Shown: piece by piece, positions 37,040 through 42,814 of the stretch | How the letters are laid out: each line of letters starts with the position of its first letter | Position numbering within the stretch: position 1 is the first letter of the stretch | Source of the DNA: Euprymna scolopes | Lineage: Eukaryota | DNA length: 64,000 nt | Assembly (NCBI GenBank): GCA_053919585.1 | Contig: CM132812.1 | Direction: 5' to 3' (one strand) | Notes under the pieces: generated by a model | The model's input: only the letters and a program-made list of their open reading frames with translations | Databases searched by the model: none | Told to the model about the DNA's origin: nothing | Made by a program: the position numbers and the translations under genes

Positions 37040-37294
37040 NNNNNNNNNNNNNNNNNNNNNNNNNNNNNNNNNNNNNNNNNNNNNNNNNNNNNNNNNNNNN
37101 NNNNNNNNNNNNNNNNNNNNNNNNNNNNNNNNNNNNNNNNNNNNNNNNNNNNNNNNNNNNNNNNNNNNNNNNNNNNNNNNNNNNNNNNNNNNNNNNNNNN
37201 NNNNNNNNNNNNNNNNNNNNNNNNNNNNNNNNNNNNNNNNNNNNNNNNNNNNNNNNNNNNNNNNNNNNNNNNNNNNNNNNNNNNNNNNNNNNNN
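37040..37294. other. Assembly gap (others: 15547-15675, 23687-23832, 28834-29035, 35733-35860)
   Basis: Runs of N. Confidence 1.
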
Positions 37295-40200
37295 CTCGCC
37301 GTGCCCTTAAGTGCAATTGTCTGGATCTCTTTTGCACTTGGTTCATCAGAAATATTAGTTAGGTTAGACTTCAGGTTCTTCTTCATACACCCTGTGGAAC
37401 ATATGATAACTGGTATGATTGATATCTCCCTAAGATTCCAGTTTATTTTTTATATCATACATGTAGACTAAGGTATTTAGTCTGTTTCTCTCTAGCTCTG
37501 TTCAGACCGCCATGATTAGGAACACTCACTTACATCAAGGTTGAAACTCTCTCTCTCTCTCTCTCTCTCTCTGATTTATTCCATATAACTATGTCAGGTT
37601 TCACATCAGCATTTAGGGTAGGTGGCTGTAGGGATTACATAGTTGTAATGTATGATTTATAAGTCATTTCCAACTGGTCTTTCAGGTTGATGTTCCCAGG
37701 ACTTGCTGTTACAGCGGATGTTTTATTTTTTACAGATGCTCCAGTAGAGTTACTTACATACTCTATCATGTCTTGCTTTACAGGATCCGTCCCCTAGAAG
37801 GACCTTGCAACTTGACATCATATGAATAATACTTTCCATTTGTGTATGGCAGAATCTGCATTTATTGTCATTACTAATCCCTACCATGTTCTTTAAGGTA
37901 TTTGTCATCAATCCTTGGTCTTGAACAGTCATTATGACCTTTTCCTGATCGTGGTTGAGGGCTAATCTTTTGAGCCAGTCCGAGGAACCTTCTTTGTCTA
38001 TGTATTCCTGAGAGAGTCCCCCCTAAAAAAATATTTTGCACGCTTATGTTGGTCCCATTCTTTAAGATTCATCCTTTGGAAGGTCTCAGCATATTTCCGC
38101 CGGCTCTTTCTTGCTATTTCTGTGCCACACTTGTTTGGTGCTTCGTACTTATCTGAGAGACAGCCCTGGTCAAAATGCTTGGCCAGCTGTGTGACTGATG
38201 TTTTCCTGCTGACTCTTGTCTCTTGAATTTCGTATACTATTGAGAAGGTGTGATTCTGGGAGATTCTCAGATACTGACCGGTGCTCACAATAGTTGCCCT
38301 ATGTTGATGATTGATCTCTGAGAGTCCCAGACCTCCTTCTACCGTGAGCCAATACAGCCTTGATAGAAACCGATTTCTATATATTATTTTATGAAGCGTT
38401 AGTAGCTTCCGTGTCTTTACATCTAACCGGTTGATGCATTTTTCTGGCCAGTTAATGATACCAAAGATGTATGTTATTACTGGCATAGCAAGCTAGTTGA
38501 TGGCAGTAATTTTATTTGTATTTGTGAGCTGTGTTTTGCATATTTTCCTCGCCCAGCGTATATATTCTTTACTAATCTTCTCCGTCATCTTGGCATGCTG
38601 TATGTTCTCGTTTTCCTCAATGTCAAGGTACTTATAAGGCTCGTGCTCTTCTAGATCCCTTATGTCGATGTTTTCATTAAGCTGCATATTTTCTGTGGGG
38701 ATCTTCTTCCCAGCTCTGTTTGTAAAGTTGACACATTTGTCTAGGTCAAACTTCATTCCGATGTTATTGGAGAATGTGTGTACTACCTGCAGAAGCTGGT
38801 GCGGATCCGCGTCAGAGCTGGCATACAATTTAGGGGCATCCATGAAGAGCAGATCGTTTACTCTCTTGATTGGATCTTAATGGTGTCCCTGACTCAAATT
38901 ATAGGCGCTCATCGTTTATTTTAGGAGCTTGCTGAGTGGGTCTAATGCGATACAGAAGAGTAAGGGAGATAAACTGTCACATTGGAATATTCCACTTTTG
39001 AGGTTTAGTTCATGGATGATGGTCATTCCTCCATTGTGATTGAATGATATTGTGGTTTTCCACATTTGAATGTGAGCCGCTAGTGTTTGTCTAATTATCG
39101 GATGGATCTTGTATAACTCAAGCACCGAAGTAACAATGTGTGTGGCACGCTGTCAAATGCCTTCTGGTAATCGATCCATGCCACGCAATGGATTTTTTGT
39201 CTCTTCCTACAGTCTGCTAATATGATATTGTGGATCAATAGCTGGTCTTTGGTACCGAGACATCTTCTGCACCCTGTCTGCTCTATTTCAAGGTAGGTCC
39301 CAGAAGATAGGTAGTCACGTATATCGCCGACAATAAGACAATTGAAAAGTTTATAAGTAGTTGTTTGACAGCATATTGGCCTTTATTTATTTGGGTGTTA
39401 GATCTTCTTGGTCTTGGGTATGAGGCTGGTGTCCACCTCTGTCAGCCAGGGTAGTGTTGATTCTGCATCTCTTAGCATCCTGCTGAAGCAATCACTGTAG
39501 TTGTGGTGGAGTGCAGACAATTCATTCAGTCAAAAGTTTTGGACATTTTCTTGTTACCGTACCCGGAGTTATGACTGGTTCTGGCATTTGAGTCTTGGTT
39601 TCGTTGAGTTTAATATCTTCAATCCACTGGGCGTTTTGATTGTATTTGCTTTCTGTTTCAAATAGAGGCCTCCAGGTGGACTATCTATAATAATGGCGTT
39701 TCTTATAATCTGCCTGTTAAAAGTCCTTTGGTTTGCTTTAAATCGCCTATTTTGAATCTGGGAGCTGATCTTGTTCTCCTGGGTTTCAATCCTCTGAGCA
39801 AATGCGGGCATTTCCCCTCCAACTCCCTAGTCGTATATGAAACACCTCAATGTTCTCATGGTGGTATTTGGTACAGTGTTTTCTTGTCGTGGTCTCAAGT
39901 TGACTCTGTACCGAGGGATCTGAAGGAACTATTTTATTTGGCTTAGTTCCTTCCTGCAGAGGTTAAGTTGTTTTTGCAGCTTGGTTTCCAGTTAGGTGTT
40001 TTCTTGAGATTCTGCGCCCTATTAGATGATTGAAGTTGAATGCTCGACTGTTAATTTTTCTGTCGATGTATCGTTCAGCTGCATATGTGATATGGTTGAG
40101 TTCTGTGAGCGTTAGTGTCGCTGGTATTAGCCTCTTGAGAGCGATGTTAACTGGCTATAACAGTCTTTGCTCTTCCGGCAGCTTTGAACAAACGTGGTCT

Positions 40201-41456
40201 GTCCTGCATTGTCATACACCTCATTTCCCCAATCGTGTTGCTGAGCTCCTCCCCCAAAGCTAACGGTTCACCATCTGCGTCTTGGAGTACAACTGATGGT
40301 GGTGATAGTCTAGGTCTTGTGTGGTGATGTAAGTAATGGTATCCTGTTAGGTGATGTAGATTCTTATGTTGGTATTTGTGGGGTTTCCAGCAGAAAGTTT
40401 GTTAAGGCACATGTTATGTAATCCAGAGACTCCAGTGGCACAGGAGTACCAGGAGAGCTGTGCATGTGCTGGGACAGTTGGATGGGTTCTGATGGTAATT
40501 TAGTGGTTGTTGTTGGAATAGGTCTGTGGGAATTTTTATTGGGTTTTCTAGGGGGCATCTGTTGTTCACCAAAAGAGCTGTTATTTTTAAAGGAATGTAG
40601 TCTAGTTCTCTTGTGGTGAACATTACCAGCCTGCTATATGCTGTGTTGTAATTCTACCTGAAGGGATGTTTGCCTTTCTATGATAAAAATGAAAAAGGTC
40701 CCTCTCCAGGTTGTGATTCTTTTGTTTTACATAATATGTTGCCCATATTAGTGTTCACCTCTCTTCCCTTTCCCATACTACCCCTGCATACGTCTTGTCT
40801 CCTAATCCTTTTCACTTATGATAGTCTTCTTTTGCGGTCTTCAGAGCCTTATGTGTAATGGTATTTACTTCCTCTTGTCGGATATATCTTCCCATCTGTG
40901 AGATGAGGCATCGCAGGTTGTGTAATGATGTGTCCGTTTTCTCCGCTGGAATGTTTGAAGCTTTTATTTTCTCGGTAAGTATCTCTCCTGTGCTGCGTTC
41001 CCATTTCTCGCACCTTGAGTAGTGGCAGCAGTGCAGAAGGACCTTTTTCTGTTCGACAGACCATGACTAGTTTTTAATCCCCCTTCTGTTCTTTTGGGGT
41101 CTGTAAAGCAAGAGGGAGGAAAGTCGGTTGGTCCATCTTGATCATGGACTGGTTGATGACCTTGTGTGATGTCTGAAGTGATTGGGGTACCACCTCTCGA
41201 GGCAAGAAGGTTCACATCATTTCTATCCTCTTCCTGCCTAGTGCGTAAACAGTGTGAGGGGCCAATTTGCTCCTGGGCGACGGCCGTCCGATTTGAATTC
41301 CTTTTTTTGTCATTTTTCACGGTTATTCCTCATTGCCCTCGGCTTCTTATTGCTTATTAGAAGCTTCCCTCTACCTAATTCACATAAGCAGAGGGGTTGC
41401 CCCCATCCGCAACCCGGAGGACGCACCGGAGATTGCCGGAGGAAGACCAGCATTTG
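37295..41456 (-). mobile_element. Decayed RLE-type non-LTR retrotransposon, R4/Dong clade-like; 3' end lost in the assembly gap
   Basis: Fragmented single ORF with RT motifs GIFQCDSLSPLLFCIALDPLS (QGDSLSP), LFMDAPKLYA (YMDDLKLYA), IGMKFDLDKC, YKYLDI and GGLGL. Then come the zinc knuckle CRFC..ESIIHMMSSC, RHDRVCK and a KPDIV-like endonuclease segment near 37590. Confidence 0.9.
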
Positions 41457-41599: not shown

Positions 41600-42620
41600 T
41601 ACAAAAGGAACATAATGAACTCGTTAATATTTAGTAGCGTAGCCCTTCTGCAATTTGACAGCCTGTAATCTTTTGGAATTCCTTGAATCATACTGCATCA
41701 ATACTCCGGAGAAAGGGCATTTCACTTTTCTTTAATTTTTGTCCAAAGTTCTAAATTTGAAATGTTATCATTGCGGAGCTGTTGCTTGATGTAATGCTAT
41801 ACGTTTTCGATAGGTGTGGAGATTGTGTAGGTCAATCCAAACACAAACAAATATCATGCTCTTCCAGGAGACTCTTTACATTGCCAGCCGCCTGAATGAG
41901 AGCATTATCCTACATGAAGATCGGATTGTCATCCAAATTCCGACCAAAGTAGAATAGAAAATGCTCAGTCAACATATTAATGTACTTGGTCGAATTAATT
42001 CCGCATTGCATGCGAACTATAGGTCCTGCATCATTGGTACTAAATTGCCCCACACCAAAACCGAACCTCCAACAACTTGCAGCGTTGAAACTGGGCCCCT
42101 AGGGTAAAATTCCTCGTCTTTTCTTCGACGGACGTATGCCTTCCATCACTGCCTATCCTATTGAACTTACTTACGTCGCTAAAAAGCACTTTTGACCAAT
42201 ATGAAGGGTCATGATCTTCATTGCATCTGACGAAGTCCAGACGGTCTTTCTGTTCTTTACAGAAATCATTGGCTTGCGTCTTGAGGCATATACTCGCAAA
42301 TTAAATTCTTTATTCTGTTTTTGACAGTAGAAAGAGAGCACTTTTTAACAAGATCGCACTGTTGTTGGATTTGGGGAGACGTTTCAAATCTGTTTCTTAG
42401 GTTGCAGATATTGATAGCATTGTCTTCCCTGTTAGAAGTAACCCTACTAGGACCAGATTTAGGAGCATCCCGAAGACTGATGGTTGTTTGGTGATTTTGC
42501 ACACTCTTTCGTACCGTTTTATCGCCTTTCAATCTGCGGCCGATTTCTTAATTGGATAAACCAGAAAGGTGGAGATTAATGAGTGTTGTCGCCTGTTGGT
42601 GGATATTTTAAACTGATTTA
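41600..42620 (-). mobile_element. Decayed Tc1-family transposase
   Basis: HTH region SGPSRVTSNREDN...NRFETSPQI...SLSTVKNRI, then VLFSDVSKFN and IFM*DNA; many stops and frameshifts. Confidence 0.72.
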
Positions 42621-42814
42621 GGGGCGATAATTCAAGCTGGTTTTAAGCGAATTGTTGCTGTGGACTTTCTTTTTGCCTCCTCAATTTGAAGTTATTTGTT
42701 TAATTGACGTGAAGAATAGAATATTTAAATTAAAAGTCCAATATGAACAGGTAAAATTATTGAAGGATGAAAGGCGAATCAAATGATGTGTAGGTTGTTT
42801 AAACACGTACATTA

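Follow-up and report, generated by a model that had tools for sequence, protein, structure and literature searches.

A compact, probably pseudoknotted 5' untranslated region in a family of R2-like LINEs, recognized from a decayed copy in Euprymna scolopes

We analysed a stretch of 64,000 nucleotides (nt) from Euprymna scolopes (GCA_053919585.1, contig CM132812.1), which is called the window below and whose numbering is used for all positions. On its minus strand it carries the remains of a long interspersed nuclear element (LINE) of the R2-like type with a restriction-like endonuclease (RLE). The 5' untranslated region (UTR) of this dead copy probably corresponds to a module that forms a compact, pseudoknotted RNA acting in cis in intact relatives. 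The whole UTR of these relatives (115–140 nt) would fold as a single unit, in which a first stem-loop (SL1) with two stacked helices starts at nucleotide +1 and is followed by three more stem-loops (SL2–SL4). The loop of SL1, UCCUC, would pair with a (U)GAGGA strand near the start codon and thereby close the UTR into a pseudoknot. The initial annotation of the window had proposed a structured or pseudoknotted RNA at this place, and covariation on alignments of the family supports this proposal and indicates that the UTR is under selection. The structured RNA itself is real; the fold that had been drawn on the window copy appears, instead, to be a by-product of decay.

Fold of the family UTR and its support

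The host genome (5.9 Gb, 925 contigs) contains 110 occurrences of a conserved 28-mer from the UTR. A covariance model built here (R1) matches at least 150 genomic places at 125–147 bits, and these matches fall into three length classes only, which represent the following genomic lineages.

Lineage A, 141 nt; the window copy belongs here
Lineage B, 128 nt
Lineage F, 129 nt

Seven further lineages were found through homologues of the open reading frame (ORF) protein on contigs of ENA and Logan (L038, L063, L064, L091, L093, L094 and L096–L099), and several of the contigs that carry the UTR are Tara Oceans marine metagenomes. The ten lineages share the UTR length given above. When metagenomes were scanned with a conserved 23-mer taken from the ORF start, the one match was bacterial and due to chance.

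In the numbering of lineage A, counted from RNA nucleotide +1, the outer helix of SL1 pairs 1–6 with 24–30 and the inner helix pairs 8–10 with 21–23, and the loop bears UCCUC, often extended to UCCUCA. SL2 pairs CCCC(C) with GGGG(G) around a loop containing UUGC. SL3 is formed by 61–67 with 83–89 and is longer in some lineages, and SL4 by 92–96 with 110–114. The proposed pseudoknot joins the loop of SL1 to (U)GAGGA at 124–129, located 3–16 nt upstream of the AUG. The corresponding features of the window copy are listed below.

41314..41450, minus strand: whole 5' UTR of the decayed LINE copy; RNA nucleotide +1 is 41450, and this 5' boundary is common to 30 genomic copies
41426..41450, minus strand: SL1 remnant; the outer helix CTGG/CCGG is kept with a wobble, as judged by alignment with family copies
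41439..41444, minus strand: TTCCTC, which in the proposed pseudoknot is the strand from the SL1 loop; CCUC is invariant in 12 of 12 sequences and pairs with GAGG
41400..41420, minus strand: SL2, CCTCC (41420–41416) with GGGGG (41404–41400), loop GGGTTGCGGAT; 100% of cells paired in 12 sequences
41367..41395, minus strand: SL3, an 11-bp hairpin; stem CCCTCTGCTTA/TAGGTAGAGGG of 10–11 bp (41395–41385 with 41377–41367), a real family feature; five of seven modelled pairs changed on both sides, 98.8% of cells paired
41342..41364, minus strand: SL4, GCTTC/GAAGC (41364–41360 with 41346–41342) with a 13-nt loop, a real family feature; three of five pairs changed on both sides
41326..41341, minus strand: conserved single-stranded linker, CGYGGACAAU in the family and CGAGGGCAAT here, then GAGGAA (41331–41326), the 3' strand of the pseudoknot

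The main covariation test comprised 12 sequences from the 10 lineages, 31 pairs, 500 shuffles, five measures and controls with slid partners. The family fold has 96.6% of its cells paired, with changes on both sides in 12 of the 31 pairs (20 cells). No shuffle among the 500 attained any of the five measures, and the slid-partner controls reached at most 59% pairing and at most five pairs with double changes. The same trend was observed on an 8-sequence set, and a plain MAFFT alignment of eight sequences, made without structure fitting, gave the same picture (four pairs and nine cells). The sequence comparison thus indicates that the hairpin helices SL1–SL4 are maintained by compensatory changes across 10 lineages.

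The double changes are concentrated in SL1, SL3 and SL4. Pair 4/27 of the outer SL1 helix changes from G-C to U-A, the stem of SL3 in L038 has an entirely different sequence with the pairing kept, and SL4 is reduced to GC-UUCG-GC in L091. In SL2, a compensatory change to A-U occurs once (L091), and L094 has U-A in the other register. In the linker, the alignment of eight sequences shows no variation at G119 and C121–G128 (numbering of the family). The GAC..GAGG core is invariant in all 12 rows of the larger one, and three linker bases before GAGG vary in L093 and L094.

The pseudoknot helix was picked by nested minimum free energy (MFE) folding in four of six lineages and by the centroid structure in a fifth. 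It contains one A-U to G-C double change (L093), one wobble (L038) and one mismatch (L094). Taken with the conservation of both strands, these comparisons suggest that the UTR probably closes as a pseudoknot. Three other pairings of our own were rejected: a helix CCAUCC/GGAUGG (23–28 with 48–53), a long-range helix (3–10 with 55–62) and a second pseudoknot (GUCC/GGAC). Each lacks compensatory changes and has pairs broken by variation, and each is equalled by 500 of 500 shuffles.

The same N-terminal protein domain is found in relatives with approximately 55% identity in the reverse transcriptase (RT) (L039, L041 and L065) and in L100, whose N-terminal domain is 36–42% identical. Model R1 gave no match on the 5' UTRs of these four relatives; their UTRs fold, yet they look unrelated to the module. 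In L041/L042 (54% RT identity), the 5' UTR at ~150–450 consists of tandem repeats of ~90 nt. Such repeats recall the monomer promoters of some LINEs. In L100 (~78–250), a single sequence, folding prediction pairs the initial 13 nt of the UTR with the strand immediately ahead of the AUG, which would be the same principle of closing the UTR with other sequences.

The element, its decayed copy and its insertion sites

Two further features define the element in the window.

41311..41313, minus strand: ATG opening the remnant of the single ORF; its translation agrees with the N-terminus of the family
37295..41310, minus strand: decayed element body with N-terminal domain, RT, CCHC motif and RLE, interrupted by many stops and frameshifts (frame scan, blastn)

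Intact relatives have one ORF of ~1350–1400 amino acids, in which RVT_1 is the sole Pfam match and no apurinic endonuclease (APE) domain is found. In protein P0003, CRFC..H....C (CCHC) and KPDIV...IEVSVP (PD-(D/E)xK-like) were read by eye after the RT. The element protein matches R2 proteins in PDB (E 8e-24) from the RT through the C-terminus. Because RVT_1 occurs without an APE domain, the CCHC and RLE motifs follow the RT, and solved R2 proteins are matched, the protein sequence identifies the element as an RLE-type, R2-like LINE. The initial annotation had placed the region at the 5' end of a putative R4/Dong-like element, directly 5' of an ORF start on the minus strand, and had read the letters of that strand as we do.

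Model R1 matches 41315–41450(−) with 102.8 bits. The element starts at 41450 (CTGG), not at 41456 as annotated earlier. Its body is 83–86% identical to the full-length copy L033 (blastn), and the copy is old, with 83–89% identity at best to other genomic copies. The first ATG of the family is GTG here. The ORF remnant is interrupted by stops, frameshifts and two N runs and reaches ~37295, and the final ~140 nt of the element lie inside the N run 37040–37294. The 5' ends of 30 other genomic copies are ~97% alike and start with CTGGTGTGCCGTC. The window copy is without 7 nt of this family end (TGTGCCG) and has three more private changes within the 20 nt that follow the deletion. With half of its SL1 missing and a broken ORF, the window copy is inert.

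These private changes also account for the hairpin that opened the earlier fold (GCAAT-CT-CCGG...CCGG-GTTGC). The 5' strand of the inner SL1 helix is gone in the 7-nt deletion, and the new hairpin is built by two substitutions, C>A and A>G, and an inserted TC. With up to three mismatches allowed, the 5.9-Gb genome contains this 29-nt variant a single time, and by eye two to four of the nine pairs are broken in each of six lineages. The GAGGGC/GTCCTC pairing that accompanied it is likewise private to the window copy. The 142-nt stretch as such has a fold only modestly better than those of shuffled sequences (z = −2.72), of which 3 in 200 did as well. On 12 sequences, however, the earlier fold pairs 71% of cells and its covariation is no better than that of shuffles, so that it does not represent a conserved module. 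Of the stems drawn at that time, the two that correspond to SL3 and SL4 stand as family features with compensatory changes. The first hairpin and GAGGGC/GTCCTC do not stand, and from the sequence both are best seen as by-products of decay. The covariation check is thus positive for SL1–SL4 of the family fold and negative for the fold drawn on the window copy.

Immediately upstream of the LINE, at 41620–42700 (minus strand), lies a decayed remnant of a Tc1/mariner-type transposase, which reads ...VLFSDVSKFN... and ends in ...RLQAVKLQKGYATKY followed by a stop.

The start codon context differs among the lineages. In lineage A (L008 and others; element nt 136–190), the first AUG is out of frame and opens a 17-codon frame, and the ORF starts at the second AUG, 8 nt after the first. 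Lineages B and C (L062, L038) have an in-frame first AUG.

Many copies lie in sense orientation inside C2H2 zinc-finger genes, directly after the linker codons ...HTGEK(P). Such insertions were found in the genome (L013, L045, L050, L053, L054 and L060) and on ENA, Logan and Tara contigs (L038, L093, L096, L097, L099 and L100). Among 42 distinct genomic 5' flanks, about 8 are of this linker type, as are most metagenome contigs, and most other 5' flanks are microsatellites of the (CA)n, (TA)n or ACAT type. The 5' end of the element itself (CTGGTGTG) is similar to the linker DNA (ACTGGTGA...). Among the papers listed when the literature was searched for LINEs with zinc-finger linkers as targets, none contained the term TGEKP. 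One predicted protein of 319 amino acids (P0209) begins as a C2H2 zinc finger (...HVRTHT...) and runs into the N-terminal domain of the element; its sequence marks it as a putative read-through gene call across an insertion.

Ahead of full-length copies there are often one to three short fragments, arranged head to tail, of the same copy's first 13–45 nt (L003, L004, L007, L016, L017, L022, L049, L052, L078 and L098; also L024, L051 and L089). In a few copies a whole extra UTR of ~130–150 nt precedes the element. It looks as if the reverse transcriptase had re-copied the 5' end of the RNA after reaching it.

Possible roles of the UTR RNA

The UTR RNA would act in cis at the 5' end of the element transcript. 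The job that we rank first, and favour tentatively, is a non-catalytic one: the fold may place the start codon for cap-independent initiation, may serve as a 5' handle for the element's own protein, or may do both. A protein-binding role would resemble that in R2, where the 5' RNA directs R2 protein function (PMC2346776). We favour a non-catalytic job because cap-dependent scanning is hard to reconcile with a stable fold that extends from +1 to the AUG.

Several points weigh against the overall interpretation. The function of the UTR module is something that we infer. The relatives R2, R4 and Dong use ribozymes at the same position, which favours self-cleavage. The core of the pseudoknot (CCUC/GAGG) is invariant, its double change occurs only in L093, which is truncated at the 5' end, and L094 carries a mismatch. 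The MFE z-scores are modest (−0.4 to −2.75), and the alignments of the 8- and 12-sequence tests were fitted to the model structure, which favours that structure. Moreover, the conservation of the unpaired parts could also mean a promoter at the DNA level.

The strongest competitor is a non-canonical self-cleaving ribozyme, possibly descended from the hepatitis delta virus (HDV)-like type, which would cut 5' of +1 to free the RNA from read-through transcripts. We regard this as a real but minority possibility. Ribozymes of the HDV-like kind that sit at the 5' ends of R2-type elements were reportedly described by Ruminski et al. in 2011, as related by Eickbush et al. in 2013. R2, R4 and Dong bear such ribozymes, and that of Dong was shown to cleave (PMC3774820); for these elements the premise of the initial annotation, a 5' ribozyme of the HDV-like kind, was therefore correct. 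The module occupies the same place, at the very 5' end of an RLE LINE and ending just before the ORF. HDV-like ribozymes have a P1 of 6–7 bp at the cleavage site and a P3 of 3 bp around a pyrimidine-rich L3 of 7–9 nt. The outer SL1 helix of the module is of the P1 type, since it starts at +1 and its 3' strand (P1') follows directly after a hairpin like P3/L3, as in the HDV-like fold (PMC3774820). The inner helix corresponds to a 3-bp P3, either GCC/GGC or GCU/AGC (a double change in three lineages), with a UCCUC loop of 7–10 nt. This loop takes part in a pseudoknot in both cases, and its motif resembles CCUCCUCGUGG, the most conserved string of the R2 ribozyme (PMC5035012). In a catalytic form, GCC-(UCCUC loop)-GGC would be P3/L3 and the outer SL1 helix P1, and the docking of GAGGA into L3 would replace P1.1 and P2. 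This docking would bring the invariant C of GGACAAU near the site; in sequence this C lies 3 nt before GAGGA, and it might be a counterpart of the catalytic C that HDV-like ribozymes have on the joining strand ahead of their last helix strand. There is hardly any variation in the unpaired linker, and the sense insertions in C2H2 zinc-finger genes make co-transcription plausible.

However, important parts of an HDV-like ribozyme are missing. Wherever the 5' strand of SL1 is kept, P1 and P3 are separated by one nucleotide (U or A), which leaves no 5' strand for P2. In HDV-like ribozymes, P2 links the segment from between P1 and P3 to the 3' end and so yields a nested double pseudoknot, and P1.1 is made by two cytosines of L3 with the bases that come immediately after P1'. 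Here, P1' is followed by NRCGU and not by the GG of P1.1, and where the end is intact the +1 pair is C-G and not G.U. The partner strand of the loop lies ~100 nt downstream, with three extra hairpins between. The pseudoknot strand abuts P3' and should stack on P3, not under the cleavage-site end of P1. A canonical HDV fold fitted by hand failed without P2 and P1.1. The Rfam scan proposed earlier gave no credible match at the gathering score or at E≤10 for the window copy, three genomic copies, lineage D, three more lineages and four distant relatives. The covariance models of the HDV, hatchet, twister, twister-sister, pistol and hammerhead ribozymes did not score at E≤10 on any lineage. Because P2, P1.1 and the G.U wobble are missing, we do not file the module as HDV-like, and its sequence argues that it is not a canonical ribozyme of this class. 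A remodelled, still catalytic descendant of an HDV-like ribozyme is conceivable, if rather unlikely. Slightly less likely still is a new kind of 5'-terminal self-cleaving RNA, with a P1-P3-L3 core without P2 and P1.1 and an active site that would be locked by a distal GAGGA docked into L3.

Internal promoters that start transcription at +1 occur in many LINEs. The first ~130 bp of the element might thus be constrained at the DNA level as such a promoter, with the RNA fold being secondary. The precise 5' ends, the strong sequence conservation of unpaired blocks and the many insertions in microsatellites, which are perhaps not transcribed, are consistent with it. However, 12 pairs have changed on both sides and kept their complementarity, which is not predicted for a protein site on DNA, and by eye no pattern like an initiator (Inr) or downstream promoter element (DPE) was seen, a weaker argument. 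We consider a promoter improbable as the main explanation, and it would be compatible with an RNA function too.

Flaviviruses have exonuclease-resistant pseudoknots, and the fold might in a similar way set the 5' end non-catalytically: a 5'-3' exonuclease acting on read-through transcripts would stall at it. A compact pseudoknotted fold that begins exactly at the mature 5' end, in elements inserted in sense orientation in transcribed genes, would suit this purpose. However, no similarity to known resistant RNAs was found in Rfam and no three-way junction or ring topology is evident, and we judge this explanation very unlikely.

Least credible of all is that RTE and further distant clades of LINEs have the fold drawn on the window copy as a common module, as had been suggested: the string put forward in its favour, GCGTCC..GGTTGCGGATGG, is the SL2 region of this LINE family and is conserved within this family only, the drawn hairpin is unique to the window copy, the scored genomic matches (at least 150) all have the lengths of family lineages, relatives at ~55% RT identity are already without the module, and no link to RTE or another clade was found.

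Comparison with other 5' RNAs of LINEs

R2-type LINEs rely on structured 5' RNAs to form their 5' ends, initiate translation and guide their protein. To our knowledge, every such 5' RNA described is an HDV-like ribozyme or, in Perere-3 of the RTE clade, a twister variant. The elements studied here form a sister group that is abundant in an animal genome of 5.9 Gb and also occurs in marine metagenomes. In the same position they carry another fold, which is well supported by covariation and has no family match in Rfam. If the UTR cleaves, it would be a new ribozyme architecture and would show how an HDV-like core can be rebuilt. A LINE residing in zinc-finger genes and microsatellites would then cut itself from host transcripts, with translation starting a few nucleotides later. 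If it does not cleave, it would be a compact cap-proximal pseudoknot that solves translation start or protein loading in another way.

The 5' RNA of R2Bm is the closest parallel for the favoured, non-catalytic role. Both are structured RNAs, pseudoknotted in R2Bm and probably so here, and are located near the 5' end of an R2-type element. The R2Bm RNA acts in cis via the element's own protein, is 323 nt long and lies inside the coding region (PMC2346776), whereas the module described here is the whole UTR. No sequence similarity between the two was seen.

Perere-3, from Schistosoma mansoni, has twister-variant ribozymes at its 5' end (Liu et al. 2021, PMC8501958). It shares with our family a fold at the LINE 5' end that is not of the HDV type, and that of Perere-3 serves processing and translation of the ORF (PMC8501958). 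However, it belongs to another LINE clade and has another fold, and no twister model matches the UTRs studied here.

In its insertion habits, the family is most comparable to Dong, an RLE LINE that targets (TAA)n microsatellites (PMC3774820, PMC4640811). Both have a single ORF, insert into simple repeats and show variable 5' junctions; the targets here are repeats of the (CA) and (TA) types and the linker of C2H2 zinc-finger genes. Compared with these known systems, the UTR represents a further, new form of 5' RNA module in R2-type LINEs.
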